DNA of 64,000 nt from Selaginella moellendorffii. Lineage: Eukaryota; Plantae; Lycopodiophyta. The translations under genes and the position numbers were made by a program. A model generated the notes under the pieces. That model was not told where the DNA came from, searched no databases, and saw nothing but the letters and a program-made list of their open reading frames with translations. Within the stretch, counting starts at the first letter, position 1; the number at the start of each line of letters is the position of its first letter. This document shows, piece by piece, positions 27,865 to 62,800 of the stretch. The stretch covers positions 124,001-188,000 of the forward strand of contig NW_003314320.1 of NCBI RefSeq assembly GCF_000143415.4, given 5' to 3'.

Positions 27865-29688
27865 TCACTGGTTTGCCAGGAGATTCATCGGCATGCCAAA
27901 CTTTGGCTGCAAAGTTAGCACCTGAAATGGCGAGTGGACGTAAGTTTCCGAGAGCTCAAACTTGAACTTGCGTAGGATCATCGCAAGGATGATCTTCGTC
28001 TCGATCATGGCGAAGCTCTGTCCCACGCAAGTTCGCGGCCCCACGGAGAACGGCAAGAACGGCCTTTGCTGTTGGGAGACGAACCTATCTGGATTGAAGC
28101 TCTTGGCATCTACCCCCCAGAACTTCTCGTTGTAGTTTATGACGATCAGAGGCACGAGTAGCAGAGTTCCTTTTGGGATGACGAGTTCTTTGAGCTTGAC
28201 CTTGTTGTGTGTGTAGCGATTTAGCAAAGGAACCGGGGGATACATTCTAAGAGCCTCGTTGATCACCATTGTCATCTGGAGCAAAAGAAAGAAAGAGTTT
28301 TACAAAATTACAAGATAATAGAGGAATGGCAAGTTTACGGATTTGAGATTGCCGAGCATCTCCAAAGTGTTTGGAGCGGAGACTTGTCCACAAACTTGAC
28401 AAACTTCTTGACGTAGCCGAGTCTGCCAGTCGGGATTGAGTGCCAAAAGCAGCATCGTCCACGCTAGTAGAGCTGCGGACGTTTCTTGTCCCGTGAAAAA
28501 GAAAGTTTTGCACTCGTCGATCACGTCCTGCATCGTCACCTGGATGTCCAGCTTCTTACCGTTGTTAAAATCCAAAACTCCATCTTTTGCAGCCAGCATC
28601 AATCCCAAGAGATCCTTCCCGTATGATCCACTGACACTCGACTCCTTCAATCGGTTTACGACGATTTTTCGAAGCTTGCTGTCGATTTGTTGCTTTAAAG
28701 TCCACCTGCGTCGATTGGCGGACGTTGGAAGAAATCTAAAGAAGCGCTTACGTTTATCAAGAAGGCGTATAGAACGAAAAGAAAAGAGACAAAAACCGCA
28801 CCTAAAACCAGGCAGATGAACTTGACCTTGCCACTCCAAGTGAATGTATTGCTGCTCGATTTGCATCTCGAAAACTTCCTTTCCTGCCGCGTAGCTCGTC
28901 CCAAAAGCCGTCCGGCACAAAACATCCTGTGTGATGTCTCGGAGCTTTGACGCAACATCCACCGGTCCCTCGGTGGTTTTCCACTGCTTGAGGTTCTCCT
29001 CGACGCAAGCTACCATAGCATCGATCATCAACTGCAAATGAAAACATTTAGAAGCTTGGTGGAGAAAGAAAAATGAAAACTTTCGAAATAGAGAGAGTTA
29101 ATCACCTTCAGCTTCTCGTTGTGGAAAGCCAAAGAGACCATCTTTCGCTTTTGGGACCATCTCTCGTTCATAGTCAGCAACGCAATCCCATCCCCAAACA
29201 AATCCCTGGCGGCATGCTGGCCGGGATCCCTGTCAAGACTCCCACTTTTGTCGCAAAGCACTTCTTTCATCAGCTCTGGATCGCTTATCATCAGCCTTGG
29301 CTGTGATCCCCACCACACCAAAAACGTTTCACCTGTGTACACATTCCGCGAGCTTCAATCATCCACAAAAACTGGGAAAAAAGATCGATCTCGTACCGTA
29401 TGATCTGGACCACGCTGCATAGTAAGGAAGGACTTTCGCCACAACGCCACCATGATTGTCGTCTCTAATTTCGCCAGTGGAACTCTTGACAACTTCGACT
29501 GCCATGAGCTCGCGTACTTGATCCAAGTTCCCGAGGAACAAGCGTGGAACCGGTCCCAGGACGCCTTGCTGCTTGAAAGCCTGGAGGAGCCGCCGAGGCC
29601 TCCAAAGGAAATCGCGAGCCAGTTGCCACACACATATCGTTGCTATCAGAGAGACCCCTGCTGTGACAACATTCCAGATGAGATCCAT
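27865..29688 (-). CDS. Cytochrome P450, CYP72 clan, 5 exons
   Basis: N-terminal anchor, FLWRPRRL...GPVPRLFLGN, I-helix TFFFTGQETSA, EALRMYPP, FNPDRF, heme motif PFSVGPRTCVGQ. Confidence 0.93.
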
Positions 29689-31555: not shown

Positions 31556-34500
31556 TCAACTAGATGGAACTCTCGAGTGATGATCCATCGTCTTAATTCT
31601 TCTTCGTATTTCGTGGCTTTCTTTCCACATTCCAGCCGCGGCATACGTGTTTGCCATGAGCGAGTAAGCTGCCGAATCCTCGCTGTCTAGCTCCACCACT
31701 GCCTCAAACGCGATCCTGGCCACTTCCACATCCTTCCACTTCCGAGCGGCCGCTAGCACAGTCATCCATATCACCCTGTCCGCTCTAATAGGCATCGCTT
31801 CCACCAAAGCCAGCGCTTCCCGGAGATGGTTCTTCCTCCCGAGAAGATCGACCATGCAAGTGTAGTGCCCAAGTCCGGGAGCCACTCCAAAGCTGCTAGA
31901 CGAGGAGCGCATCTTCTCAAATATCTCCTTCCCTTTGTCGACGAGCCCCGCGTGGTTGCATGCGTTGAGCACGCAGAGAAGCGTCACTCCATCTGGTTGC
32001 AGGGAACTAGAAGCTTGCATCCTCTCGAACTGGGAGAAAACTTTCCCGGTGTCGCCGTGGTAGCCATAGCCTGCGATGAGAGCGTTCCACGCCACCAAGT
32101 TCTTTCGAGACATGGCTTCGAAGACTTGCTCGCTCTCGGCCATGCTCCCACACTTCGCATAGAAATCCACCAGAGAACTCGCGACAAGCTCGTCACTCTC
32201 GAGTCCCGCCTTGCGACTTTCAGCATGGATTTCTCTCCCGGTTTCCAGTGCCGCGAGAGTGGTGCAAGCCTTCACCACCGCGGCGTAAGTTCTAGCATCC
32301 GGCAGTAGCGATCGTTGCTCTTTCATTCTGGAGAAAAGCTCGAGAGCGAAGCTTGCTTCGTCACGACTCTGAGCATAACCTGTTATCACCAAGTTCCAAG
32401 CTGCCAAGTCGGGTTGCTTCATCCTGTTGAAAACTTTGAGAGCGTCTCCCACACTCCCACACTTCACGTACATCTCGAGCAGACCATTTGCAACAAAGAG
32501 ATCGTCCTCGTGCCCGCCTTGCAGAACTTGAGCGTGGAGAGCAGCACCTTTGTCCAAGCACCAAGCTCTCAAAGAAGCATCAATCTTCTCCTTCTCGGCC
32601 ATTTTCTCTCCACTTCCACTCACAGCCTCGGAGCAAGCCTTGAGAGCAGCAACAAAAGTTCTAGCATCCGGTTCCAGTCTTTCTTCGCTTTGCATGCGCT
32701 CAAAGAGCTCCAATGCAAGCTCGCTCTTCCCACTCTTCGCGTATCCCAGAATCAATGCCGTCCACGAGATGAGATCTCGCTGCTTCATCCTGTCAAACAC
32801 CCTCTTCGCGTCGTCCATCCTTCCAAAGTTAGCGTACATATCCACTAGAGCGTTTGCCACCAAAGTTTGCGATTCATAGTCCCCAAGCCGAGAGTGTATC
32901 GCCGTTCCAGCGCTCACAAACTTTGCCTGCTCCTCCGGTTTAGCTCGAAAACCAGCACAGCAGGCCTTTATCCCTGCAACGTAAGCTCGAGCGTCGGGTT
33001 TCAAAGCATCTTCTTCTTGCATCCGAGCGAAACATTCCAACGCTAGATTTGTTTCTCCACTGTGAACATATCCCAGAATCAGAGCACTCCATGAGATCAC
33101 ATCCCTGTTCTTCATTCTTTCGAGGACCTGGCGAGCTTCTTCCGGCCTCCCACACTTTGCAAATATATCCACGAGCGAGCTGCCGATAAAAGCATCGCAA
33201 GAAAAATCATCCTTCTCGGCTTGCGATTGAATTTCTCGGGCCTTTTCTAGACACCTGTTCCTGTTTTGTAAATCCACTCCTTCGTCTCCTTCTCTTTGGT
33301 GGCTTCCACAAGAAAGCTCAGCGCAAGCCTTGAGTGCCGCAACGTAAGTTCGAGAATTTGCTTTCAAGCCTTGTTCTTGTTTTTCTTCTCGTTGTTTGAG
33401 CCTGTCAAAGAGCTCCAAAGCATGTCCCGGATCACTGCTCGAAGCATACTTCAGAATCATGATGTTCCACGAAACGATATCACGCTGTGGCATTCTATCG
33501 AAAACCTGTCGAGCTTCCGGCAAGCTCCCACACTCTCCATACATGTCGATCAGCGCGTTTGCAACGAAGATATCCGACTCGAATCCACCCGTTACTGCCT
33601 CCGAGTGGATCGCCCGACCTTTTTCCAAGCCAAGTTCCTTCTCGTTTTCTCTTGCAAGTTGAGTGCAAGCCTTCGCAGCAGCAATCATCGTTCTCGCGTT
33701 TGGTCTTAGCTTCTCGGCCTTCATTCGTTCGTAGAGCTCTAGCGCCAAGCCAGCTTCACCGTTTTGAGCGTATCCGGATATGAGCGTAGTCCATGAAACA
33801 ACGTCGCGATTCGGGATTTTCTCAAACACCTTGCGTGCGCTGGCCAAGCTTCCACACTTCACGTAAGTGTCCACCAGAGCGTTCAACACGGCAGTGTCCG
33901 ACTTGTGTGGAGACTTGAAGATAAGATCAGCTACGTGCTTGCATTCTTCCAAGCATTTTCTTCTCCCTGCAAGAGCAGCACAAGCCTTTAGCACCGATTG
34001 AAAAGTTTTCGAGTTTGGAACCAAACCGTCCTTTCGCATCTCGCCGAAGAGCTCCAGTGCAAGCTCGCCATCGCCACCCTGAGAAGCTCCCATGATCATG
34101 GAGTTCCACAAAACCACGTCCCGCTTCTCAACACTCCGAAAGGCCCTGTAAGAGTCCTCCAAGCTTCCACACTTGGAGTACATCTCCACCAGGCTACTCG
34201 CAACGAAAACGTCCGAGCCGAGGTCCTTCTGACCAACCCGAGAGTGTAGAAACATCCCTTTCTCCAAGGACACCGGCTTCACAAGTTTCCCGCTAAGTTC
34301 CATGGAGTTTTCTTTCGCAGCAGTATCGGCACAGGCTCTCAAAGCCGCCACGAAAGTCCGAGCGTTGGGAGTGAGGCCTTGTTCTTCTTGCAGGAACGCG
34401 AAGAGCTCCAAAGCGAGCTCTCCATTTCCAGTTTGCACGTATCCCGACATGAGAGAAGTCCAGGAGATCACATCACGTCGCGGCATTCGATCGAAGACTC

Positions 34501-34884
34501 TCTGTGCTTCCAGCATGCTCCCACACTTGGCGTACATGTCTACGAGCGAGTTTGCCACGAAAACCTCCAGCTCTTCATCACTGTTCTTTGACTGATCGGC
34601 GTGGATGATCCGGCCAGCTCGCAAGTTTCTGGTTTTGCTGCATGCCTTGAGTGCTGCGAGAACGATTGAAATGCTCGGCTTCTCGCCCTTGTCACGCATT
34701 TTCGTGTAGATCCTGAGGACTTGGTAGTCTTTGTCTTTGGCTTCATGGCTCCTTCACAATGCATCCAAGGTGAGAAAAGAGAAAGAGCAACAGAATGAGA
34801 TAGAAAGAGAGAAGAATACCTTGTTGATGGAAGGTCTTGCAATGGCGAAATTCTTCTTTGGTTTGGGAAGAACCTTACAGCCAT
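31556..34884 (-). CDS. PLS-class pentatricopeptide repeat protein with E domain, no DYW
   Basis: 1047-aa ORF of P-L-S triplets ending HYTCMVDLLGR...AYSLMANTYAAAGMWKE. An in-frame upstream exon 34820-34884 joins through a 68-bp GT-AG intron (34752-34819). Confidence 0.93.
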
Positions 34885-44517: not shown

Positions 44518-47340
44518 ATGGTTCCAGTTAAGTCGGGAAAGAACTCACAGGCAAAGAACGATGAGCAGTTCAAGAGATACCTCGAGCTCATCGAGTCGTC
44601 CAAGAGCTTGTCAAAGGCTTTGGCTGCGCACGCTCACATCGGCGCGACCAAGGATACATTCCTCTCAAACAAGCTCATCCAAATGTATGGAAGGTGCGGT
44701 GGCCCAGACCAGGCTCGCAAGATCTTCGACACTTTGGGACTTCGGAGAAACACCTTTTCTTGGGAACTTATGTTCGCTGCTTATACCAAGAACAGGCGCC
44801 TGGGAGAAGCCAGAGAGCTCTTCGATCGAATGGAGAGACGGGACATAGTTTCGTGGACGACGCTCGTCACAGCTTATGCCCAGAACGGGCACGTCGATGA
44901 TGCAAAGTTGGTGCTGGAAGCGATGCCTCGCCATGACACCGTTGTCTGGAACGTAGTTCTCGGCAGCTACGTCCAGAGCGATCGCATGGACGAGGCACTA
45001 GAAATCTTTGACAGGATGGGCGATGACCGAGACATTCTCTCCTGGAACGCGATGCTCGCGGGGTATTCGCGGAATGGAGAGGTGGAGATGGCCGAAGAGA
45101 TCTTCGCCCGGATGCCACTGCGGAATAACAGGTCCTGGAACACGATGCTGGCTCTCTATTCCCAGGCCGGGTTTATAGAAGAACTTGAACTCCTTTTCTC
45201 GATCATGCCGGACAGTGACATGGTTTCTTACTCCACTGCAGTAGCAGCGTATTCACAGATGAGACTCGTGAAAGAAGCTAGCGCTCTCTTCCGGAAAATG
45301 CCAGTGTGGGATCTTGTCTCGTGGAACTCGGTGCTGTCGGCCTATGCTCAGAACGATCATATGGAAGAAGCCAGGGAGTTCTTCCGGTTGGAGCTCCCGG
45401 AATGGGATTTGATCTCGTGGAACACGCTGCTCTGCGGGGCTTCTCGATCCGGACGCTCCGAGCTCGCTGTTGCGATCTTCCGCGAGATGCCGAGCCACAG
45501 TGTCGTCAGCTGGAACGCTCTCCTCGGCTGCTGCGAAGAACTGGAAGCCGCGAGGAAGATTTTCGAGACAATGATGCCGCAGTGGAGTGGGACCTCGGTG
45601 ACGAGCATGGTGGCTGTTCTTATCCGGAGTGGCTGCTTCGAACAGGTACTGGAGCTCCTCGAGAAGATCCCGGAGAAGAGCTTAGTGGTGTGGAACTCGG
45701 TGCTAGCAATGCTCCGGGAAGATGGAAAGCTGAGAGAAGCCGAGATGGTGTTTGAGGAGATGGCGTGTGGGAACGTTTTCTCCTTCACGGCAATGGTGGC
45801 GGCCTATGCCGAGTCGGGGCATATCACTCAAGCGCAGCGGCTTTTCGAGGATCATATGCTCGAGCACGACTTCGTCTCGAGCTCCCTGATGATCGGTTCT
45901 CTCTCGCAAGCCGGGGACTTGGGCGCTGCCGAGAAGATCTTCGCGGGGATGCCGCTGCTCGACTCGGTAACTTGGAATGAGATGCTGGCCGCGTATGTTC
46001 ATCATGGGCATGTCGAGAAGTCACGAGAGATCTTCAGCCAAGTGCCGCGAAAGGATCTTTGTTGCTGGAACTCGATGCTATCTATCCTCCACAACTGCGA
46101 CGAGGCCATGGATTTCTTCGAGAACTCAATGCCGGCGAGGGATATGGTCTCTTGGAACACGCTTCTGGCGGCCTATGCCCGCGCTGGGAATACCAAAGAG
46201 GCAATACGAGTCTTCGAAGACATTCCGGAATGGAATCTCGTGTCCTGGAACTCGATCCTGGCCGTCCATCCCGATGCCCACAGGCTGTTTGTGCGGGAGG
46301 TTCCAGAGTATAATCTCGCCACCTTTAGCACCATGCTGACGTGGTATGCCCGGTCCGGGCATGTTGTCTCTGCGGTTGATCTCTTCCAGAAAATGCCCGA
46401 GAGAGATTTAACGGCGTGTAACAACATGGTGGCTGTGTACTCACAAGAAGGCCATGCGGAGGAGGCCCAGGAAATCTTTGATTCCATGCCATGTCACAGC
46501 TTAGCATCTTGGGCCGGCATTGGGAATATTTACGATTTCAGGAGAGCCAAGAAACTATACGAGAATATCCCAGAGCTAGATGTGTGCTTGTCCACAAGAC
46601 TCTTTTCTTTATATGCTCTATGCAATGAGTTTGGTGAGCTTGAGATGCTCTTTGAGAGGTTCTTACAAAAGAGTTTGGCTCTCTGGACTTCATTGTTAGT
46701 GGCAGTTTCTCAAGTTGGTGATTTGGATAGATGCGTGGGAATCTTTGCCAGAATGCCCGAGTGGGACTTGGTATCATCAACAGTCATGCTTGTGCTTTAT
46801 GCCCAGAAAGGTTATCTTGAGGACGCTCTGGGTTTGTTTGCTTCTATGCCTGAGAAAGATACTGTGTGCCACACTGCAATGCTCTCCGCATATGCCCAAC
46901 AAGATTGCATTGCGGAGGCCTGGCAAATCTTCTGGGATATTCCCCAGAGGAACTTAGTATCTTGGTGTGCGATGCTAGCAGTTTATTCTCAGAATGGGAA
47001 TCTTGAACAAGCGTTCCATCTGTTTCAAATGATGCCAGAGCAAAACACTGTTTCTTGGAGTGCAATGTTGGGTGCACATGCCCAGGGTGGCCATTCATCT
47101 CAAGCTTTTCAGTTGTTTTATGAGATGAATTTGAGTGAAATGCCATCAGAGTCATGCTTTGTGTCTCTTCTTCTAGCATGTAGCCATACAGGCAAACAAA
47201 GCTTTGCCAAGCATTATATTGTATCCATGGCTGATGATTTTGGAATACAAGTTGGAGATAATGCTAAATGTTGCTTGATGGATCTCTTAGCTAGAAGTGG
47301 GAATTCAATGAGTACAAGCATTTGGTCTTTGCAGCAATGA
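44518..47340 (+). CDS. PPR protein dominated by short ~31-aa motifs, ending after a partial E-like region
   Basis: 940-aa intronless ORF of tandem D/N.VSWN.ML.AY...G....A..F..MP units. Confidence 0.9.
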   Translation: MVPVKSGKNSQAKNDEQFKRYLELIESSKSLSKALAAHAHIGATKDTFLSNKLIQMYGRCGGPDQARKIFDTLGLRRNTFSWELMFAAYTKNRRLGEARELFDRMERRDIVSWTTLVTAYAQNGHVDDAKLVLEAMPRHDTVVWNVVLGSYVQSDRMDEALEIFDRMGDDRDILSWNAMLAGYSRNGEVEMAEEIFARMPLRNNRSWNTMLALYSQAGFIEELELLFSIMPDSDMVSYSTAVAAYSQMRLVKEASALFRKMPVWDLVSWNSVLSAYAQNDHMEEAREFFRLELPEWDLISWNTLLCGASRSGRSELAVAIFREMPSHSVVSWNALLGCCEELEAARKIFETMMPQWSGTSVTSMVAVLIRSGCFEQVLELLEKIPEKSLVVWNSVLAMLREDGKLREAEMVFEEMACGNVFSFTAMVAAYAESGHITQAQRLFEDHMLEHDFVSSSLMIGSLSQAGDLGAAEKIFAGMPLLDSVTWNEMLAAYVHHGHVEKSREIFSQVPRKDLCCWNSMLSILHNCDEAMDFFENSMPARDMVSWNTLLAAYARAGNTKEAIRVFEDIPEWNLVSWNSILAVHPDAHRLFVREVPEYNLATFSTMLTWYARSGHVVSAVDLFQKMPERDLTACNNMVAVYSQEGHAEEAQEIFDSMPCHSLASWAGIGNIYDFRRAKKLYENIPELDVCLSTRLFSLYALCNEFGELEMLFERFLQKSLALWTSLLVAVSQVGDLDRCVGIFARMPEWDLVSSTVMLVLYAQKGYLEDALGLFASMPEKDTVCHTAMLSAYAQQDCIAEAWQIFWDIPQRNLVSWCAMLAVYSQNGNLEQAFHLFQMMPEQNTVSWSAMLGAHAQGGHSSQAFQLFYEMNLSEMPSESCFVSLLLACSHTGKQSFAKHYIVSMADDFGIQVGDNAKCCLMDLLARSGNSMSTSIWSLQQ

Positions 47341-48278
47341 AGTGTTGTCTATTGAGTGACTAAAAGATGATGATACAATCTACAGAAATTATGTTTGTCC
47401 CAATCACAAGAATGAGATTGCATAATATTGATAAGAGGTATAAATTTCAATAGTTTATATACAGAAATTTATCAAACTAGCTTTTACAACGTTTTTTAAT
47501 TAATGTTATTTTAAAAGTATAACATGAACAAAGTCTTGTTACTCAATATTGTAATCTATAGTAATATGAATAAAATGTTGTTGCTAAAGATAGTAAGTAA
47601 ACAAAAATATAGAAAGAATTAGTATATAAATTATGGTGAATAGAATGGATAATTCATTAAAATAGTGCAATAATTCCTTTCTAGTTCTATTCTTTGGGAC
47701 TATCTCATAATAGCTTTACCATTCATAACATATTATTTTTATTTATCATTTAAAAAACTTGAGCTAAAAATACACTCTCCAAAACTAAATCAAAGTAAAT
47801 TTTAAACATGACAGATTTCTATAATCCATTAACTTGGGTTGAGTTTGTAGTAACAATTATCAATCTCCCCCCTGCCCTCCCCCCCAGACACAAAAAAAAA
47901 TAAAAAATAAAAAAATGTAGTATTTATGTATATATATTATCATCTATATAAGAATAAAATATTCATATGTAACAAAACATAAATTTATAATGGTCCCTTA
48001 TCTAAAAATATTTGATTAATTTACTTATTTTATAAACAAATATTTAAATTTTCATTAAGCATACATTTAGGACATAAAAGACATTAAAAAAATGAATTTT
48101 TTATCATCTTTGCCTTTAAAAGAATTTATAGTTAATTTCTAAAGTTTTGAATAAAAAATTAATAGAAGAATAGATAGAGTAGATTTATTTAATTATTTCA
48201 TAAAACAATATTCAAAAATTATAGTGGTTTATTTTTATTATGATATGAAAATCATATACAAAATTGCTTTGATATTAA

Positions 48279-48280
<2 letters not shown>

Positions 48281-48340
<60 letters not shown>

Positions 48341-48355
48341 ATATATATATGTATG

Positions 48356-48389
<34 letters not shown>

Positions 48390-48423
48390 TGTATGTATGT
48401 ATGTATGTATGTATATATGTATG

Positions 48424-48456
<33 letters not shown>

Positions 48457-48459
48457 GTG

Positions 48460-48514
<55 letters not shown>

Positions 48515-48517
48515 GTG

Positions 48518-48571
<54 letters not shown>

Positions 48572-48576
48572 TATAT
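48281..48576. repeat. (TA)n/(TATG)n compound microsatellite
   Basis: Directly visible. Confidence 0.97.
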
Positions 48577-48661
48577 CATATAGTGTTGATGAGGAAATAT
48601 AAATAATTTGATATGTTACCCTAAATTATTAGAATTTCAGTAAAATTAATATTTAAATTTC

Positions 48662-49000
48662 CAGATCTTCATTCATCCTGATCATTGAGATCTTATGGCC
48701 TTCTGGACACCTTGGGGCCTCTTCGCTTTCAACGTCCTCCCGTTTGGCTTGTGTAATGCCGGAGCTACCTTTTAGTGCTTTATGACCCATGCCTTTCATG
48801 ACTTGATTGGAGGCACCTTGAGGGTGTATATGAATGATTTGTGCATGACCTCTGACTCCTTTGAGGACCACTTTGTGCACTTGGAGCAGATCTTCACTCG
48901 TTGCCAACAACACAAGTTTTCATTGAACCCGAGAAAGTGAAAATTCGGGGTGATTGAAGGCCGGTTGCTAGGCTTTGATGTTTCACAGGACGGGATTAGT
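48662..49000 (+). mobile_element. Ty3/Gypsy reverse-transcriptase fragment
   Basis: QIFIHPDH*DLMAFWTPWGLFAFNVLPFGLCNAGATF*...VYMNDL...LNPRK*KFG...LLGFDVSQDGI; three stops; the YxDD motif reads YMND. Confidence 0.9.
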
Positions 49001-49209
49001 CATTCTTTTTGGTTGTTTACACAATACTCAGCTATAAATAGCACATCATCAAGAAGTGAATTATCATATTTTAAACTCAAAACACTATAGACTGAATATA
49101 GGGTTTTATTTCTATCATGATTGTTAGCAACTATGCTATTAATTCTATAGGAACTTCAATTTTTTAGAGCAGTTTATAGTCACTCAATAAAAGAGCTCTA
49201 TCACATACA

Positions 49210-51720
49210 GAAATAACCCTAAAAACCCTAGCTTATATATAGTAACAAGTGGTCCAAATCAAAACCAATCTAATTGCTATTAAAAATTCATGATGCTAAT
49301 ATTAATATATGATATTATAGCCATACAATTGGACATCATATCATCCTCTCTTCTTAAAAGGGTGGAATGTAGTCAGGTTCTCTGGTTGATGGGCTAGGAT
49401 TTAGAAGAATATCAGGAAGAGGTATCAATTGATTTATAAGCGGTGTTAGTTGTTCATGATCCCTTTATACGAAGCATTTTAGTTGTTGCATATTCATAAT
49501 TTATGGGGGATTGGCTTATTGAATGTTATATTAAACTTCATAAACTTATAGTCTAACTTGCCGTAACACTTAATATAGTTCCTTCCACTGAGCAAGGAGC
49601 CCTTTAGACAAACCACATACCATAAGATTCACAAAATACCAAGTCATTCACTTTGTACTCCGCAAGTGGATAATAATGGAAATTTTCCATCTTTGTCTCA
49701 TTTATATGTGGCCCAAGTGTTTAGCAAAAGTTTACTTGAACTAGTGAAAGGATACTTATCAAATATTGATCCCAAGGCCTAGTATCAGTAGCTCATGGGA
49801 AACATAAAGGTAAATTTAACTCCAATAGCAATATCTAATCATGACTATATAAGAGTTTTTATAGTGAAGTATCAATAAAACTCTATACTGTTTTTATATA
49901 TGTATACAGAAGAGACAACAAATAACCATTGTAATCTGAATGCTAAAATTTCACATACTTCACGATCATACTTTTGAAGGTCTAAATGAGTTGTTCCATA
50001 AAACTATCTATTTATGGATGATAAGCACTTGTGAAAGTGTGGCATATCCTCAGCTGAGATATTAAAATATGAAATGTCTCATCCATAAATGCGGGAGCAC
50101 TATCTGAGAGAATTCACTCCAGACAAAAATGTTGGAACACCATTCAATTAAAGAGGAAGTTGTAAGCTCTTGAGAGAAATTGTTCTGGACAAAACTATTG
50201 GAACACTATTCAATTGAAGAGGAAGTTATAAGTTTTTGAATTTGGACTTCTTGGAAATTCATCTAACCCAATACTATTCAAACCTAAGGACATTTAACCT
50301 AAAGTATCATAAAACCCTTAATTGACTAGAAAATAGATTGCACTCTTATTCATGGGCCTTTTCTGTATATATTTAAACCTATATGAATCGTGTCTTGAGT
50401 TGTTTTCTTTGGTTATTTATAATCCACCACACTTCCCTACAAGTTCACGTGAGAGCTGTAACTTTCCCGAGAGCTTTGCTCTCTTGACACCTTACCCCTT
50501 GGGTCGAGCCCAATCAAAGGAAAACTAAATTTACTAAATGTCAATTTCAACATATAGTATAATTCCTTTAACCAACTAATAAAGTTAGACCCAAGACCCA
50601 AATGTAACCTCATTAATTTGGACTTCCTTGGAGGTCATCTAACCCAATATTATTCAAACCCAATAACATTTAATGCCAAGTATCCCAAGACCCTTAATCA
50701 ATTTGAAAAAGGGGTGTGCTCTCGTTCATAGGCTCTTTCTCTTTATATTTAAATATATTTAAATATGTGGATCATCTCTCGAATTGTTCTCTTTAGTTGC
50801 TTATAGAAGTATTTAATATCAATTATAGATGCACTAGCAAGATCACTAACTTTCACTTAATGAGTCAAATAGTCAAAAATAATAATAATATACTCATTGC
50901 CAGTAGTTGGAAAGGGCCTTATCAAATCAAATGCCACCAACTCAAACAAATAGAACACTGCATTTGAGTTTAACTATCTTTCCATAACATAAGGGGGAGT
51001 ATTATGAGTTTGGCACTAAACGCAGCTATGCATATAGATAACATCATATCACATCTCTAACCAATAAAAAAACTAACATAATTTTTCAATCACACAACGA
51101 TATCTTATAAGCTTATATAGAATGGGAGAATCATAGTAGGCATGGAGAAAGCATGGAATAAAAATTAAAGGCACCACCAATTATAAATGGTCATTAAAAT
51201 CCATCCCTATAAAATAAAGAATGTCATCTTTAAAATAATATTGAGAATGTAAATGCTGAAATAACAAGTTATCAGCAAGTGATGTAGGAATCTCAAATCC
51301 ATCGTGTAGCTTTCAGATACATAACTCAACTTTTTGAGCCTCACGAACCTCGTCAGAAAAAGGTAAATCTTGCTCTATACCTTGTAGATACTGAATATCA
51401 AATACAATAACCATCGATAGCACAAAATCCTCATCTAGAAAATTTATAAATGCTAAAACAATAGACTTGTCAAAAATAGGAGAAAGAATGAAAAACAGAA
51501 AGAAGCTTAAGAAAGGGCATTAAAACTCTTTAGGTCATGAACAACTTCAAAATTATATATCTTAAGCTTCAGGGGATATCGAGTAGTATGACCAACTAAA
51601 TTCTTTTGCTTCAATAACGAAGTAACCATAACATTATCACCTTTTAGTAATATTTGAGAACCATGTAAATATGCATGAAACTTTTTGAAATCACTATTGC
51701 TAAACACTCATTCTCTATCG
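49210..51720 (-). mobile_element. Decayed Gypsy element: integrase and RNase H remnants
   Basis: Minus strand TFTSAYHP (~50030), LSKGLLAQWKELY (~49590), RNase H FHAYLHG...LLKQKNL...YNFEVVH (51507-51707); PPT-like AAGAAGAGAGGA beside an LTR-like segment at 49210-49343 that resembles ~56135-56262. Confidence 0.7.
50105..50805. repeat. Internal direct repeats (~66 bp x2 and ~185 bp x2)
   Basis: 50105-50238 is a tandem pair; 50239-50420 is repeated, diverged, at ~50616-50805. Confidence 0.7.
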
Positions 51721-51844
51721 TGGAATACTTCATCTCTACTAATTGTAATATACAACTGATGTATATAATAGGATGATGTTAACCAAACACAATCATGATT
51801 TGTTGCATCAACCTCTATCAACATCCTAACCCAAGACTACCACA

Positions 51845-54616
51845 TGTTGGACAACTCACATAGATTTGTTGATCTTGAGCAATCCTCGCTACAATGCATT
51901 CGTTAAACACCTACCATTGCATTGTCAACCTCTGCTCCATTCATTGTAAGGCTGTTGAACCAAGAACCTTTTTTTTTATTTCACTCCATTCACTTTTACA
52001 CATATGTTATGTCTAGAAAACAATTGTCCACCCTCTTGTCAACTTCTGCACCAAAAGGCACACCAACTTCCAACCAAATATTCCTTTAATTCCCCCACTA
52101 TAGCCAAAAGAAGAAGGAAAAACTCCTAACTTTGACTAAGTCTTATTCTTGAGCTAGCTCTAGCCTTTGACATCACCCCAGTGATAATTATACTCCATCT
52201 TTAGAGCACTCCTTTCCAAATGGAACATGATAGCACCATAATTGAGCTCCATTCACAAGTGTGGGCAAAAGATTACTAGCAAATCCTCCAATTTGACTGA
52301 GCCATTGATATTCACAGCCTTCATGCAATATGGTCTAATCCAGTGGATTTTAAGCTTGCTTAGATGCCTCTAATACTTGCTCTTGTACAGCAACACGAGA
52401 TCTCCTACCTAAAAACTTTTAGCCCATAAATGATGATCATACCACTTCTTGCATTGACGTTGGACAGCTTTATGAGCTTGGAAAGCAAGGAGATGAATCT
52501 CATCCAACTTCTCCAACTGCTCTAGCTGCTACTAAATAACTTTGTCCCAATCATAATTGCAAGCTACTACTATCCACAAAGAAGGAATTTTTAGCTCGAG
52601 AGGAAGGATTGCTTCTTAGCCATAAATCAATTGGAATGGTGAGAACCATGTAGTTACCTTGTAGGCAACTTTGTAAGTCCATAGTGCATCAAGAAGCCTG
52701 GTATCCTAGTCATTGGCACTTGCATTGCAAGGCTTGGTCACGGTGTCACATAGTGTTTTATTGGTTTAGGCTTATTGATTTCCTAGCTTGTAAAAACAAT
52801 TTTCCGAGTGATGATTAGTTCACCAACAATACTGACACTCCTCTTGATTCACCACTGGTTGTGGACTCATTTGGGTATTGTCTATAATTGTTACATCACA
52901 CACACTAGATGTTTTTTAGTTGCCACATGGGTTGTGGCCTACTTTGTGCCCTCAATTGCAAGTCACTCATCTTTTTTGTCATGGCTTCCACCATGTCTTC
53001 CTTTATTTTCTTCATCTCTATTTGGATGTCCACTATAGTTGGCATTGAATTTGGAATTGCACTTGTTGAAGCTTGTCATTATTGTTGTTGTTAGCGACTA
53101 TAGTCCATCATCCCAAGGCTTATTCCAAATACTCCAAAAGGCTGTTGTTCAATAGGCATTAGTTGCTACAACATACTTCCAAGTCCTCCCATCATGGGAT
53201 TCATCATTACATCACCAAAAGTTCCCAATCTAGGATTACTATGATGGTGTTTTATCTTGAGTTGCTCTTGCTCTCATGTTCCCGTAAAATGAATTGCATC
53301 AACCAAAGTTTACGGATTATGGTATGAGACATGAAAGCTAATCATATGAGGCAAGCCATTTATGTAGTATGATACTTGCTCCTCTTTTGTTGGTTGTGGC
53401 TACTTCTTGAGGATCAATCCCTTGAACATGAATGTATAGCTTTGTAAACTCTTGCCTGGCAATAGTTGGAAATAACTTAGATCACTCATGAGCTACTGTG
53501 AAAAGCCTACCAACCTGAAGGTAGCTAAAATGAATGCCTGTAACAATGCCCAATCTATCGTTGTTGGAACTTAAGCCATCCATTCTATAGCTACACCTTG
53601 TTTCCAAAGATCTACTACATTTGCCTCGTTATTTGCTATACATGTATTCTCAAATGCTCTCGCATGTGCATCTAGATCTCCCATACCATTGAAGATGGTA
53701 TACTTCATCATTATCATTGTCATATTCTTTGTTTGTTGCTGCCAAGGTTGTTGTACTTGTTGGATTGATGGCTAATGCCACTACTCTACTAGTTGTTGTT
53801 GTGGTGGTGACAACTATAACTCTTGCCACTTGTTTTCTTATTCTTGATCATTCTTCTACTTGTTGACAGAAATGTTTGGCTGAGGATTTGCACTCCTTGC
53901 TTTTGGACTCTCGGGATCATAAATTAGTGGTAGATTTCCCACAAGAATTCTTGCCTCTCTCTCACATCATTGCTTTGCTCATCTTTCCTCTCACTTTTGC
54001 ACTTCTACAAGTCTCACCAAGTACTCTTGACTTCTTTGGCTCATACACCAAGAAGGAACAGCCTTGATCTAGTGAAGGCAACCTGACTTCTCTTGGTGCT
54101 CACCATTCCACCACAATCTCTATACTCGTTTTGTTTCTTGGGTAGTGCACCAAAAGATGTTGCTCCTTGCAATGACACACTAGCAAAGTGGAGAATAACT
54201 GCTGCCTAGCCTCATCACTAGCTTTATTAGTGACCTCTACTAGAATCTCTGCTAACAAGGTTGCCTATAAGTTAGACAACTCACATAGATTTATTGATCT
54301 TGAGTAATCCTTGCTATGATGTGCTCCTCAAACACCTGTAATTGCTATTGCACCACCAACTTCCGCTCCATGAGCTCCAAAACTATTGGACGAGGCATCC
54401 TTTTAAAAACCTTTTCTTTTATTCCACTCCTTTCATTTTTACACACATCCTATGCTTAGAAAATAGCTATCCTCCCTCTCATCAACCTCTAGCACCAAGG
54501 GATGCACCCCATTCTAGCCAAATATTTCTTTAATTCCCCCACTATAACCAAAAGAAGAAGGAAAAACTCTTGACATTGACTAAGTCTTATTCTTGAGTTA
54601 GCTCTAGCCCTTGATA
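51845..54616 (-). mobile_element. Small decayed LTR element with a gag-like interior and no pol
   Basis: Diverged direct repeats of ~330-345 bp at 51845-52172 (TGTT...GACA) and 54270-54616; minus-strand interior reads MKYTIFNGMGDLDAHARAFENTC, which is gag-like. Confidence 0.65.
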
Positions 54617-57600
54617 GTCACACTTCCTTACAAAAAGTAAAATCCTCAAAAAAAATCCAATCTATACCAAAGATTAAGTAAAAAATTTGACTTAACACCA
54701 CTTGCATGATTGAAGTTCAAGCTCGAGATCTCTAAAATGCATAACTAGGTATACCTCATCCCATAAACATATATGTATATAACTATTGCTATAAAGAATG
54801 AAGACTAGCTCTATTGTACAACACAATTGTAAATGATAACATGTGGCAATAGACCGAGTAATAAAAGATAAACTCAATTCTATATCAACCAATATAGAGA
54901 TAATAATAAAAGACCTTTTGTTATAAAAATAAGCTTGAAAAGTGAATAAGATAAACTAGTGTCAAGTGAACCTCTTGATAGTACTCTGAAATGGTTACCA
55001 ACTTATTCACGCAAGAACCCTCTATAACTCGTATAACTCTTTATTTCTTAAAAGAATCTTTATGTCAAAACCTTTCATTGCAACAACACCAACAACACGT
55101 TGTTGATGCTAAAGCCTCTATCCAAGAAATAAAGGATTTCAATTTGGAAAATACCAACAATACCGATATGTGTGACTAACCTCATCATATACCTAACAAT
55201 AGACATCATGGCCACAACTATATCCTCTCCTTTATCCTTAAACACAAGTAATAGTAACATCAACCCCCTCTAGAACATGGCCATTTCCATATTAAGTAGA
55301 GATGGATGTGTAACAAGAAGTGGAAGAGATAATATTTTATAATGTTGTGTTAGTCAAAGAATATTGTCAATGTGGTTGGAGCAAATGTATGCTCAAGTCT
55401 TGCAAAATTTTAATAAAGTGCTAACCATAACATTCCCAACTTAATATGTTTTGACATATTTAACTCCACACGAAGCAAAAGGCTTTAGAAATGGATGTTA
55501 AATTATATCACTAATTTAGATGGCTTTTGTCGAGGATGATACAATTGTTGGAAAATATCATTATAATTGTCAACATGTTCAAATGCTCACTTAAAGATAT
55601 CTAAGAGAATAGTTCAATTCACATGAGTGGCTACATTAAAACTATTATACTATTACAATGCTGTACCTTGGAGATATGTGGGAAACTCATGCAAACATCA
55701 AATATCATCCCAAAAATGATAGGTAACAATCACTATAAAGTGATTGAATTAATGGTGCATATCATCCCCAAGATTCCCACAAAAGAATTGTAACTGGATA
55801 TGAGAATTAGTAGTAAGAGCAAGAGAGATTATACACATATTGTAAATGTTACAATCAATTGAGTTTAATTATTAAATTACAATGTATAACATTAAGCAAT
55901 TGCACCAATTGTTGTTCTAGAGTCAAAACTACTTTGCCATGTAAAAAATAAAAAAGAAATAAAAAAGAAGAAATTGAAAAAACTACAAGAAAAGTAAGAT
56001 TTAGACAATACAAAAACTAGATCTAAATTAAAATCCAGAATCCAAACACTCTTCATGGACCAAAATTGCCTCTCATCTTCACCAATGTGAGTGCATAGAA
56101 CATAGAAATGAAATATAGAAATGTGTATATAAATTAGCTTAAAAACCTTAACTTATATACAAGAATGAGTGGTCCAGATCAAAATTAATTCGATGGCTAT
56201 CAAAATCCAACTATGCTAATATTAATATATGGCATCGTAGCTGTACATTTAAACCTCACATAGAGTAAAGAATATATTAAAATTTTATGAAATGAAGATT
56301 GATTATCTATGGATTTTTTTCACATTATTTTGTGATTCATAAAGGTTTATTTTTTGCATTTCAACCCTGGTCATTATTTGTGTTAATGCTACAAAACTTT
56401 TCTTAAATATTTTTTTCTCTACTGTAATTTATAAATTATTGTTTTTCTAATTTTATACAAGAGGACAAGATAATTTTTATGAGATAAAAGTTTCTAGTAT
56501 TTACAAGTGTTATTTATTTCATATGAAAAATTTATTTGAAGTTTATCAAGAAAATATGAAAATTTTTCTTTGTTATATCATGTCTAATTTAAAACTAACC
56601 AAAAAATTAGCATTATTGTCCTTATCACATTGCAATTGATCTAACTAACTTATCAGCATTTAAGCTCCAGAAATTACTATATATAACTCTTATTAATTTA
56701 TGTAAAATTAGTAGAATAATTTGCTGATGAGGGTGGAAACTGGAGTGTGGGGCTGTGAAAGAAATACAAATATTTTATTCAGTTAGTTTAGAAAACAGTT
56801 GGCCCTCACCTGTTAAATTAGTTAAACTGTCTATGGCCATTTGATTGAAAAATGTGCACGCCTATTAATTACAAGAATGGTCTCACTAAACTTGCACCCA
56901 TTCGGCAATAATAGGATGGCACAAGTCCTTAACCTCTTTTTTACGAGTTAGAAAGCTTAAGTTATATTGATCACATGAAGAGTTTCCCAATGCTATGAAA
57001 AATTGCCAGCTTAGTAATTAAATCGAATTAATGCAAAGGAAAAGCATATTACTTTCAGCTGGTTCCTTGAGCAATTATTTTGTGTACCAGCGTTTGGCTA
57101 CCTTTTTCATAGCTCATGAAAACTAGGTTAATTCTTTGTCACTTTTCTAGAATGAGTGATCTCACGAAAAGAAGGAAGAACAACGAGAAATAACGTTGGG
57201 AGGATCTCAACTTATGCCACGAATCTGATCGAGGTAAAAGCTTCAGTTTTTTTTGGTTTTAGCTTAACTATTTGGTTGCCATCCAAGATGCCAGGCGAAT
57301 TTCTAAAGGCTTTATGTGCAGTCCAACCACCTTCTGCTTGATGGAGAAAGATTATGAAAGAACGAAGATCAAATAACTACAAACAATAGCCCAAGAAAAA
57401 TCAATTGCACGCTCTAAAGAAGTAGAGCACGGTACCTTAATCTTACTCTTGAGCTATGTTCCTAGGGCAGGAGTGAGATGAACTCCCAGCTGATGTTGTT
57501 CGGGGCCACCAGCTGTTTTTCAGAGAGAAGTAGACACAGTGGCCCCTAAAATCGATTCGTTGCCACATATCAAATGCGAGATTAGAATCCAGACAAGTAG

Positions 57601-57979
57601 GAGAGATAGAAGAGAAACCAAAACCCGTGCTCAAGAGAAAGATAAGAGGGAAAAGTAAAAACGGTCGCTTGAGAGAGTCCGGCCGCGATTTTCCTGCAAA
57701 GAAGAGAAAAAGAAAAACAAGGACTTGTTACAAGGCTCACGCCTTGTACAGCTTCATTCCCACCTCCATTCTCGCGAGCTGCGACCTTCTTCTCCTGTGC
57801 AACCTTTGATCATGCTCTCGCCGATGCGACCAAGGCCACTCCAAACCCGAAACCCAGAGCATCAGCAATGCGTTCCTGCCTCCACCCAGAGCACTGCGAG
57901 ATCCAAAGAACTTCCCAGTGCCGCAGCCATACTTCCACGGCACCATTTTCAAGCGACCTATTTTTTGATTTTGAAAAAG

Positions 57980-58002
57980 AAAAAAAAAAAAAAATTGCAA
58001 AA
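57980..58002 (-). terminator. Pol III oligo-T terminator
   Basis: Minus strand TTTT-GCAA-T15 immediately after the RNA stem. Confidence 0.65.
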
Positions 58003-58080
58003 CTTAGTGGGTCGGAGTATGACTTATACTTCGAGACACACAGACGGGTCATCAGACGCATACTCTACAACCCAATAAGT
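57999..58080 (-). ncRNA. Candidate Pol III small RNA (82 nt, end-paired bulged stem-loop), family unrecognised
   Basis: Lies downstream of a USE+TATA with Pol III spacing; 5' ACUUAUUGGGUUGUAGAGUAUG pairs with 3' CAUACUCCGACCCACUAAGU; ends at T4 followed by a long T-tract. Confidence 0.65.
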
Positions 58081-58102
58081 AACTGTTATCATAATTCAGG
58101 GC

Positions 58103-58144
58103 TTTTTAAAGAGAAGAATCACAACTGCGTTTGGGCATGTGGGA
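58103..58144 (-). promoter_or_regulatory. Type-3 Pol III promoter (USE + TATA-like box)
   Basis: TCCCACATGC (58144-58135), 24-bp spacer, TTTAAAAA (58110-58103), predicted +1 A 22 bp further on; same geometry as plant U6 promoters. Confidence 0.7.
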
Positions 58145-58292
58145 TGTTTGTACTTTGCCCTAGACCTTGCGTTTAGGGCAGACTACGGCAAGTTATAATG
58201 ATGATTAAAGTTATGGGAAATCATTTGGACTGTTCCGCAAAGATTTAAGGGTTAGGGTTCTTGCAAGCAGATAGAATAGACATTTAGATAGA

Positions 58293-59073
58293 TCAAAGTT
58301 TTACTTCGACGTCAACGCCAGCCGGGATGTCCAGTTGCATGAGCGCATCGATTGTTCGTGGGTTTGGATTCTTGATATCGATCAGTCTCTTGTGGGTTTT
58401 GATCTGGAAGTGTTCTCGCGAATCCTTGTCGACGTGAGGCGATCGAAGCACGCAAAAGATCTTTCGCTCCGTGGGGAGTGGCACCGGACCCATGACCCCA
58501 GCTCCGGTGTTCTTGACGGCCTCCACGATCATCTTGGCAGCCTCCTCGATGTATTCCCCAAAGTAGGCCCGGAGCTTCACTCTAATCTTTTGCTGTGGCA
58601 GTGCCTGAAAAGACAAAAGAGAGATCAATCGTGAGCTTTGTCAGAGAGATTGGGGTCCGATCATTCTCTATCGGATGACCATCGTGAGAAGAAAACCAAG
58701 ACATCTCATCACCCAAGCTCAACTCTGGAAAGAAATTTCACCGATTTCACTCACCAGTGTTGCAGGCGCGGCTGCTTCTTCCGCGACTGGCGTTGCGATT
58801 GAAGGCTCTGCGTCAATGCTGCTCTCCTCAACTGGCTCTTCTACGGCCGATGTCGCGCGCGCTGGAAATCTCGATCGAGAAAGCTTCGTTGTGATCTAAA
58901 ATCCAATTCCAAGAACCTTGAGAGCCCGCGTTCTCTCGCGAGAGATAGAGATTTACCTGCATTTGAGGTAACAGCCGCGGGCGCATCGATGCCGCCAGAC
59001 ACCGTGACGAGAGAGCGCCATTATCGACGCACATTCTCATCGGCAGCGTAGAACAAGACGCTGCCATAGCCAT
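58293..59073 (-). CDS. RPS10: Plastid 30S ribosomal protein S10 (nuclear-encoded, transit peptide), multi-exon
   Basis: [62 protein letters not shown]. Confidence 0.93.
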
Positions 59074-59158: not shown

Positions 59159-62100
59159 ATGGCGCTTGCTCAGTCCGGCGCCAAGAAGGACGACGATCGG
59201 GAAGATGATGGTAAGATCTAGTGCCTGAGCTCGTAGATCTTGCGCTGCCGGTTGATTTAGGTCTTGTAGTCCTGCCAGATCTGTGGATCTGAATTCTCGA
59301 GTGTGATTTTTTATTTGCAGCGGAGTACTCTCCTTTCTATGGAATCGAGAAGGCGTCGGTTCTCCAGGAAGCTCGTGTCTTCAATGATCCTCAGCTCGAC
59401 ACGAGGAGATGTGCGCAGGTGACTCTCCATCGTCTATTTTTCCAATGTTGCTTAAGAAGTTCTCTTTGAAGGTCATCACAAAGCTTCTCTACTTGCTCAA
59501 TCAAGGGGAAACGTTCACAAAGGTGATCTATCCAGTGGTTTTCTTCTGTTCCTTTAATCCTTTGCTTGTTCTTACAGACGGAAGCGACCGAGGTTTTCTT
59601 CGCGGTCACTAAGCTCTTCCAGTCGAAAGACGTTCCTTTGAGGCGAATGGTTTATTTGATGATCAAGGAAGTCACTCCATCGTCCGACGAGGTAAGCTCG
59701 TGGAAACGCCTTTGGAAAGGTTTTTTAAGACATAGCTTTGCTGACAGGTTATCATAGTCACAAGCTCGCTGATGAAGGACATGAGCTCTAAGACGGATCT
59801 CTACCGAGCAAATGCAATAAGGGTGCTTTGTAGGATTACAGATGGTGCTCTCCTGGGTCAGATCGAGAGATACCTCAAGCAGGCCGTGGTTGATAAGAAT
59901 CCGGTTGTTGCTAGTGCTGCTATTGTCAGTGGCATTCATCTTCTACAGGTGTGGCTGCATTCTTCCCAGGTTCATTTGGATTTAAGTTTTCTTTCAGACG
60001 AATCCGGAGATCGTAAGAAGATGGAGCAACGAAGTGCAAGAGGCCGTTCAGTCCAAGAACCCTCTAGTCCAGTTCCATGCTTTGGCACTTCTGCGCCAGG
60101 TAATTACTATATTTGTTTCTGGTAATGGAAATTCTGGATCTTTATGCAGATTAAACAAAACGATCGTCTTGCTGTTAGTAAACTCGTGACTAGCCTGATT
60201 CGTGGGACGGTTCGCTCTCCTCTCGCACAATGCCTTCTTGTGCGCTACACGAGCCAGGTATTTAAATCAAAATTATAGCCGTCGGTTGTATACTGAATTA
60301 GTGATGGTCTGTAGGTGATCAAGGATTCGGCTGGAAATGCTCCCGGTGGAGATCGACCCTACTATGAATACTTGGAGACCTGTTTGCGTCATAAATCAGA
60401 AATGACACAATATGAAGCTGCGAGAATCATAACCAATTCGAGTACAGTCACCGGTCGGGAGTTGATGCCAGCCATCACGATGCTGCAAATGCTGTTAACG
60501 TCGTCGAAGCCTGTCCATCGCTTTGCTGCCGCAAGAACATTGAACAAAGTAAGTGGCATCAACAAGTCGAATTTTTGTTTGATGATCCTTTGGTTCTTTT
60601 TTCCAAACAGGTGGCCATGAGCCATCCCCTTGCAGTCACCAACTGCAATATCGACATGGAAAGCTTGATCAATGATCAAAACCGCAGCATCGCAACACTG
60701 GCCATTACGACGCTGTTGAAAACGGGAAATGAAGGTGGCGTTGATCGTTTGATGAAGCAAATTACGAGCTTTATGTCCGACATCGCGGACGAGTTCAAAA
60801 TCGTTGTTGTGGAAGCAATTCGGTCGCTTTGCCTAAAGTTTCCACAAAAATATCGGTCTTTGTAAGTGTCCTTTCCCTTTCGCTCATTTGCTGATACCGT
60901 AACTTTCCAGGATGAACTTCCTTAGCGGCATTCTTAGAGAAGAGGGAGGATTCGACTATAAAAAGGCAATCGTTGACTCGATCCTAATTCTGATCAACGA
61001 AATTCCAGACGCCAAAGAAAGCGGGCTCGTGCATCTTTGTGAGTTTATTGAAGACTGCGAGTTTACGTACCTTTCTACACAGGTTGTGCCCATTGCTATC
61101 TTGAAACAGGATGTCTTTTATCAAGATTGTTTTTCAGATATTGCATCTTCTTGGGGAAGAGGGACCAAAGACCTCCGATGCTAGCAAGTACATTCGCTAC
61201 ATCTACAATCGTGTAATATTGGAAAATGCTACTGTTCGAGCAAGCGCCGTCAGCTCGTTAGCGAAATTTGGACTTGCGGTTGACTCTCTTCGGGTAAGTG
61301 GTTGTGCAAAGTTTCTTTAGATGCTTACGCGTGTTCGCTGCAGCCGCGAATCGTCATATTGCTCAGGCGCTGCGTATATGATAACGATGATGAGGTAACA
61401 ATTCAACATTGTTTGGTTCAAAATAAACAAGGGTTGAGATTCAGGTGCGTGACCGTGCAACTATGTACTTGACTGCACTTGAAGGGGACCAAGCCGAAAG
61501 AGAAGAAGCGAAGCATTCTCTTTTTGATCCACTAAAGATACCTCTAGCCAACTTGGAAGCGAGTCTGCAGTCTTATGTAAGCAACACAGTGTCCAGTTTG
61601 TACCATCAATAACATTTTTACGCAGGATCCAAGCGAATCGCCATTCGACATACACTCAGTGTCAGTGGATGTTAAAGCACAGCCAGTCGTGGACAATAAG
61701 ATGAAGAAAACTGGAAGAGACTCTGCTCCTTCCGTTCCTGAAACCAACAGCGCGGTTGTTGCTCCAACAGTTTCTCATGAAAAAAGATTGAGCTCCATCC
61801 CGGGATTTTCTGGTTTTGGAAAACTTCTCACGGTAATTTTTCTTTCTGGACTTTGTTATTGTATATGGTCATTAATTATATACGTTGTTCTTGCAGTCGT
61901 CGCAACCTACTGAGCTAACTGAGCCGGAGACTGAGTATTCTGTGAATGCTGTAAAACACATATACGCCGAGCATGTTGTGTTTGAATTCAATTGCACGAA
62001 CACAGTAGCGGAACAAGTTCTAGAAAAGGTGAGAAACTGCGACAATCAATTAACAAGTTTTTGACGCGCTATTACTGCAGGTTACTGTGGTGGTCGACGG

Positions 62101-62800
62101 CTCAGAAGCAGAAGATTTCCAGGAGCTTCTTTCTCGCTCAATCCCATCTCTACCATATGGATCGCCCGGCCAAGCCTACGTGGTTTTCCAAAAGCCAGAA
62201 GGCGTCTCCACTGGGAAATTTGCAAACACCATGAAGTTCGTCTTGAAAGAGGTAACACTTAACACCTTGTCCCAGTACGAGCGTAACTCCTGTGACTTTC
62301 TTTTCAGGTGGATCCAACGACAAACCAGCCAGAGGATGAAGGCTACGACGATGAGTACCAGCTCGAGGATCTCCAGGTAAACCGAGCTTGTGCGTTTGGC
62401 GACTCGGTGGAAAACTCTTTCTTTTTTTCTTTCAACACAGGTGACAGCCGCGGACTACTTCGTGAAGACGAGCGTGGTGAGCTTCAAAAGCACCTGGGAG
62501 AGCCTCCAGAGCGAGTTCGAGGCCGAGTATGGGCTGGGTCCGCGCGAGAGCGTCCAAGAGGCAGTCCAGGCGGTGATTGGCATCCTCGGAATGCAGCCGT
62601 GCGAGGGGAGCGAGGTGGTGGCCGCCAACGCGAGATCTCACGTCTGCTTCCTGGCCGCAAAGTTTCTGGGAGAGATCCAGGTGTTGGTGAAGCTCGCATT
62701 TGGAATGGACGCGAAGAAGGCCGTAATGATGAAACTCACGGCGCGCTCCGACGACGAGGGAGTGTGCTCCATCGTTCACGACATTATCGGCAATGCTTGA
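59159..62800 (+). CDS. COPG: Coatomer subunit gamma (gamma-COP/SEC21), multi-exon
   Basis: KKDDDRED|[81 protein letters not shown]. Confidence 0.95.

Follow-up and report, generated by a model that had tools for sequence, protein, structure and literature searches.

The question raised by this locus is whether a short, end-paired unit behind a ribosomal protein gene of Selaginella moellendorffii is an RNA gene, and what kind of RNA it would make. [quoted passage not shown] We analysed a window of 64,000 nt, meaning the whole stretch of DNA under study, in which the unit occupies about 181,999-182,080 of scaffold GL377624.1 on the minus strand (window offset +124,000) and starts 213 bp past the stop codon of the gene for plastid RPS10. 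A sequence-only reading of the window had proposed an unrecognised type-3 Pol III gene at this position, with the layout USE, 24 bp, TATA box, 22 bp, 82-nt unit, GCAA and T15, and every element of that layout was found in its place. The coordinates of the features are collected in Table 1.

Table 1. Features of the putative Pol III gene and of the adjoining RPS10 exon, in window coordinates
Feature	Position	Strand	Remarks
Last exon of nuclear-encoded plastid RPS10 (XP_002983739.2)	58293..58604	-	RPS10 stop 147 bp upstream of USE
USE (putative SNAPc site) ATCCCACATGC	58135..58145	-	-65 to -55; identical in haplotype 2
TATA box TTTAAAAA	58103..58110	-	-30 to -23; 24 bp after USE, 22 bp before RNA unit
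Predicted 82-nt RNA, +1 = A58080	57999..58080	-	Paralog similarity breaks at 58080/58081; allele contrast
End stem, 5' arm, nt 1-22	58059..58080	-	U6 mismatch and U14-A15 bulge
Apical domain, nt 23-59, 37 nt, weakly structured	58022..58058	-	One haplotype change, G24A
CUGAUGA (nt 26-32) and CGAAG (nt 48-52), box-C / kink-turn-like pair, lead only	58029..58055	-	
End stem, 3' arm, nt 60-79	58002..58021	-	C74U in haplotype 2, still mismatched
T4 Pol III terminator (predicted)	57999..58002	-	Leaves UUU 3' overhang; followed by GCAA, then T15
T15 backup terminator (predicted)	57980..57994	-	T run interrupted in haplotype 2

Spliced genes of the neighbourhood were searched exon by exon. RPS10 (58293-59073, minus strand) and the gene for coatomer gamma (59159-62800, plus strand) stand head-to-head with ~85 bp between their start codons, so that the bidirectional promoter is very compact. 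The window also carries two long single-exon PPR genes, at 44518-47340 (plus strand) and 31556-34699 (minus strand), the former of which has no Pfam match on record, yet is clearly built of PPR-like repeats. Further repeats comprise a segment duplicated in tandem (25500-27130 and 27950-29680; period ~2.5 kb, 91-94% identity) and a pair of direct repeats 4.9 kb apart (6008-6307 and 10914-11213, 96% identity), which lie around G-skewed DNA and are possibly the LTRs of a retroelement.

The plant USE has the consensus RTCCCACATCG and lies near -70, with the TATA box at -28 to -30 (PMC9845283). In Arabidopsis, a spacing of 23-24 bp between USE and TATA box marks Pol III genes, and one of 32-34 bp marks Pol II genes (PMC8287931). 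The proposal of a plant USE held for the spacing, which at 24 bp is that of Pol III, and less well for the element itself, as ATCCCACATGC departs from RTCCCACATCG in its last two bases, although this consensus is that of Arabidopsis and may not be S. moellendorffii's own. The window has one USE core with a TATA box 22-30 bp behind it, where 0.01 would be expected. Loose USE matches alone (up to two mismatches) are at chance level in the window, with 32 seen and 33 expected, and an end-paired stem before a T4 was found in 34 of 11,101 trial segments, at 11 other sites. Because each of these features also occurs elsewhere, the weight of the case rests on promoter, stem and terminator coinciding. 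Two further words lie upstream on the minus strand: a 7-bp inverted repeat around a CCCTAAA word just before the USE (58180-58156), and a telo-box-like AACCCTA 110 bp upstream (58259-58253).

The predicted fold agrees with the pairing that the sequence-only reading had drawn. The two ends of the RNA are joined by 19 bp with pair probabilities of 0.75-1.0, running from A1-U79 to A5-U75, across a U6.C74 mismatch, from U7-A73 to G13-C67, past a UA bulge and from G16-C66 to G22-C60. The fold of the 82-nt unit has a z-score of -3.27, and none of 200 shuffled sequences was equally stable. The stem closes a loop of the proposed length of 37 nt that is, however, not fully open, with five pairs predicted inside it (C26-G52, U27-A51, G31-C46, A32-U45 and C33-G44). 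An alternative pairing of nt 1-6 (58080-58075) with nt 54-59 (58027-58022), which near-repeat nt 74-79, is perfect and more than 12 kcal/mol weaker.

The sequence-only reading had treated the locus as a single gene and overlooked that it belongs to a family, which came to light in the contigs of an independent DNA run of 2024 from the same organism, probably a Hi-C library since GATC junctions are present. These contigs pile up on 58027-58087, where their depths sum to 2,890; the corresponding figure for RPS10 is about 300, and the difference is to be read as a sign of several copies and not as a copy number. Two contig sets break at 58080 and 58081, at the predicted +1, and continue into unrelated DNA. 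On the minus strand, one of these unrelated flanks has TTAAATA at -30 to -24 and the other TTTATATA at -30 to -23, and the probability of finding TATA boxes at -30/-31 in two unrelated flanks by chance is ~3e-5 in the AT-rich DNA of the window. A third paralog contig can be aligned from nt 54 through the USE to 58167, where it diverges, and all nine of its listed changes fall in the 22 bp before +1. The end of its similarity lies inside the 7-bp inverted repeat.

At least four flank types thus appear to exist, since two break at +1 and a third is alignable past the USE, in addition to the locus in the window. The paralog contigs span part of the loop as well as an arm, so that the bodies of the paralogs are read in part; 57962-58005 was left out of the contig comparison as repeat, and the predicted 3' boundary of the family falls outside the compared segment. 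No second copy was found within the window, and no paralog attached to RPS10 was found among the contigs of the 2024 run. Judging from these contigs and from the allele described below, S. moellendorffii very probably has a multi-copy family of type-3 Pol III genes with this RNA. Transcription of at least some of the copies is likely.

The copy of haplotype 2 (GL377674.1; L017, 10994-11075) keeps the USE, the TATA box, the T4 and all 19 pairs. It differs at two of the 82 positions inside the unit (G24A and C74U), both unpaired, and at six of the 22 bases before +1, with changes reaching as far as -2 (Fisher p = 0.001). Only one of the 37 loop sites is changed between the haplotypes. No covariation was seen, as is expected of two allele rows that are nearly identical. 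The allele's retention of the signals, the paralog flanks that keep a TATA box where similarity ends at +1, and the blank Rfam result given below bear out the proposal of an unrecognised type-3 Pol III gene.

The surroundings of the two haplotypes differ in other respects. The PPR gene and RPS10 are separated by AT-rich DNA (47400-57400, compared with L017 10800-15400) whose length is about 10.9 kb in the window and about 4.6 kb in haplotype 2. In parts of it the haplotypes share only 75-85% identity, a strong divergence, against 97.6% for the small RNA gene. Past the terminator lies a GC-rich, coding-like remnant (57690-57950, minus strand; L017 11140-11450), in which the haplotypes differ by an 83-bp indel and by changes that break the frame; it is probably a pseudogene fragment.

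We considered whether there is an RNA gene at all. The unit could be a very small MITE, bounded by terminal inverted repeats, or else a hairpin of the RPS10 3' UTR, accompanied by chance look-alikes of a promoter; its arms are indeed imperfect inverted repeats, copies stand in unrelated flanks, and it lies close behind the RPS10 stop. Such an origin is highly improbable given that a TA/TAA or longer target-site duplication is absent, that a TATA box recurs at a fixed distance in unrelated flanks, that the combination of USE and TATA box far exceeds its expected frequency, and that the paralogs are not attached to RPS10. A MITE or SINE was rejected on the absence of target-site duplications, the absence by inspection of A and B boxes, and the fixed place of the TATA box.

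A related possibility is that the family is a selfish or neutral Pol III cassette, transcribed and copied together with its promoter by duplication or as the passenger of a retroelement, with no function for the host. Multiple copies would be expected of such a cassette, as would its restriction to the species: blastn and a covariance model found no homologue in the RPS10 neighbourhoods of Sphagnum, Riccia and four other plants, in a homologue search that outside S. moellendorffii covered species from other genera than Selaginella. Retrocopies would nevertheless lose the upstream promoter, yet the divergent flanks keep a TATA box at -30/-31. A and B boxes and a target-site duplication were both missing by inspection, and the body of the unit is better kept than its flanks. 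We regard a functionless cassette as distinctly unlikely.

Searches for a known identity gave little. The Rfam check that the sequence-only reading had proposed returned no known family on the unit, either for the window at gathering level or for stretches of 701 and 111 bases at E values up to 10, and ARAGORN gave no match. Searches of metagenome, viral and prokaryotic genome collections for exact words, and of phages with blastn, yielded chance matches or none, and the sequence strings of the unit occur in none of the papers searched. No RNA runs containing the stretch are on record, a blank that carries little weight because poly(A) and 18-26-nt libraries lose short structured Pol III RNAs. 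All four runs compared with the stretch are contigs, and three of these, at depth 2, have no bearing on expression. A tRNA, a vault RNA and a tRNA-derived SINE were rejected, with ARAGORN and Rfam blank and no A or B box seen by inspection.

The plant type-3 Pol III genes (U6, U6atac, U3, 7SL/SRP, MRP and telomerase RNA) share with this locus the USE and TATA box at 24 bp, a purine at +1 after a TATA box at -30, and the T-run. Their RNAs are unlike the 82-nt RNA, which has no Rfam match to any of them and no telomere template; SRP, MRP and telomerase RNA are also much longer. An SRP Alu domain was rejected, given that the UGUAG (UGUNR-like) of the unit is buried in the end stem, that no Alu helices form and that no SRP model matches. 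On sequence grounds, then, the promoter class is known and the RNA family is undescribed.

In architecture the RNA resembles the Y RNAs of vertebrates and the stem-bulge RNAs (sbRNAs) of nematodes, a comparison that the sequence-only reading had drawn. These are small Pol III families whose ends are paired in a two-part bulged stem with a central loop and a short U tail. Three features define them, namely a bulged C in the lower stem, the motif A/GUG-CAC/U in the upper stem and UUA(U/C)C in the loop (PMC4450293; PMC4030889). The likeness stands for the architecture, and A20-U21-G22 facing C60-A61-U62 fits the upper-stem motif. The defining details depart from it: the bulged C, which is the Ro60 site, is missing, and in its place are a UA bulge and a U.C mismatch (U.U in haplotype 2, where C74 is U); the loop opens with CGUCUG and not with UUAUC; UG-CA lies at the top of the upper stem, whereas in Y RNAs and sbRNAs it lies in the centre; and the Y_RNA and sbRNA models of Rfam do not match. 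By motif, the predicted 82-nt RNA is not a Y RNA orthologue.

A true Y RNA that binds a plant Ro60 might still be argued from a length of 82 nt against 83-112 nt, the type-3 promoter, the two-part bulged stem with AUG-CAU in its upper part and the U tail, and Ro60 has been described or assumed in Chlamydomonas (PMC4030889). However, our literature searches found no paper linking Selaginella with Ro60, and together with the missing motifs this leaves orthology with the barest of chances. The Class I RNAs of Dictyostelium offer a second parallel: they are multi-gene and lineage-restricted, have an snRNA-type element at about -60 and stem-joined ends, and are likely to be Pol III products (PMC7919456). 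They differ in their length of 42-65 nt, short stem, 11-nt motif and unrelated lineage, and the 82-nt RNA has no Rfam match to them. No such end-paired Pol III RNA family was found for land plants in the literature searched.

The apical domain contains motifs that invite other identifications. Within the loop, CU-GAU-GA faces GA-AG in what is predicted to be a kink-turn geometry. Among shuffled loops, 6.5% had kink-turn-like geometry, 3.4% contained UGAUGA and 0.26% contained CUGANGA followed by GAA, weak statistics that refer to motifs chosen post hoc. It is conceivable that the RNA is an orphan box C/D-like or kink-turn guide, in which CUGAUGA would be box C, UCGA or CUCGA a degenerate box D, Snu13 the bound protein and nt 33-46 antisense to rRNA or snRNA. 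The scarcity of UGAUGA and of the tandem GA geometry among the shuffles favours such a guide, as does the prediction of G31-C46, A32-U45 and C33-G44 at 0.89, and U3, itself a C/D RNA, is made by Pol III in plants (PMC8287931). It is nonetheless very unlikely: a true CUGA box D is missing from the vicinity of the 3' end, box C would lie 26 nt inside the RNA (UGAUGA at nt 27-32), the putative guide would form a loop that is short and closed, and none of the snoRNA families in Rfam matches.

The same stretch recalls the type I hammerheads of Selaginella Penelope-like elements, which are canonical (PMC4209133), with CUGAUGA, GAA and GUC present here in hammerhead order. In the 82-nt RNA, unlike in a hammerhead, C33 stands opposite C48, so that there is no helix II; G replaces A15.1, helix III is missing, helix I is not adjacent to the core, and no Rfam model matches. 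We rejected a type I hammerhead, since helices II and III cannot form and GAAG is found instead of GAAA.

The strongest of the alternatives is that the unit encodes a natural Pol III short hairpin RNA, equivalent to a miRNA precursor, from which a Dicer-like enzyme would cut ~21-22 nt from the open end and pass the arm duplexes (nt 1-21/22 and 60-81) to Argonaute. The stem begins at +1, covers nt 1-22 with two imperfections and ends in a UUU 3' overhang, and with 19 bp over nt 1-22 and 60-79 the hairpin would be able to give a 21-22-nt duplex. A Pol III route independent of Microprocessor is known in animals; the Dicer-dependent mir-1829 family of Caenorhabditis elegans likewise consists of stand-alone Pol III hairpins whose stem is roughly one Dicer measure long (PMC12487709). 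Lycophytes have homologues of DCL1, HEN1 and AGO1 (PMC5569507). Against this, neither arm is among the listed S. moellendorffii miRNAs in the supplements of You et al. 2017, which are those similar to annotated families, no complementary target for the arms was found in the window, and no plant precedent emerged from the literature searches. The loop is conserved between the alleles and at least partly among the paralogs, and a conserved 37-nt apical domain of this kind sets the RNA apart from mir-1829. We consider a Dicer substrate unlikely, and an RNA that stays uncut fits better because the paralog contigs extend beyond the arm into the loop, part of which they cover.

The explanation that we favour, with a probability of roughly 0.45, is that the transcript escapes cutting and functions as a small, stable RNA in complex with protein, in which the stem would give protection and the loop would be the working surface. 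The almost intact loop of haplotype 2, the absence of the arms from the listed miRNAs and a layout that matches Y RNAs, sbRNAs and Class I RNAs all point in this direction, as far as sequence comparison can indicate. From the established biology of plant Pol III, SNAPc and TFIIIB would load the polymerase, which would start at A58080 and stop in the T4 to release an RNA of ~80-82 nt. This product would begin with a 5' triphosphate and end in UUU-OH, to which La could bind. Like Y RNAs, nematode stem-bulge RNAs or the Class I RNAs of Dictyostelium, it may then persist as an uncut RNP, its end-to-end stem shielding both termini and providing a grip for export or for a binding protein. A protein or RNA partner may bind to the apical domain, where the CUGAUGA and GA tandem motifs could form a kink-turn-like site.

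A wider reading is more tentative, and we put it forward as a possibility with the odds against it. The family could be an expressed class of land-plant RNAs with an snRNA promoter and a function of its own, conserved across Selaginella or more widely, and as such either the first plant counterpart of the Y RNAs and sbRNAs or the first natural Pol III shRNA family that feeds Dicer. If real, a multi-copy family of 82-nt end-paired RNAs would lengthen the short list of USE-TATA Pol III genes in plants; its layout has precedents in animals, nematodes and amoebae, and none in land plants in the papers searched. The family makes it testable whether plants have RNPs similar to those of Y RNAs and sbRNAs, and whether natural shRNAs are among their Pol III products. 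Its Pol III promoters, being native to a lycophyte, could also serve to express guide RNAs.
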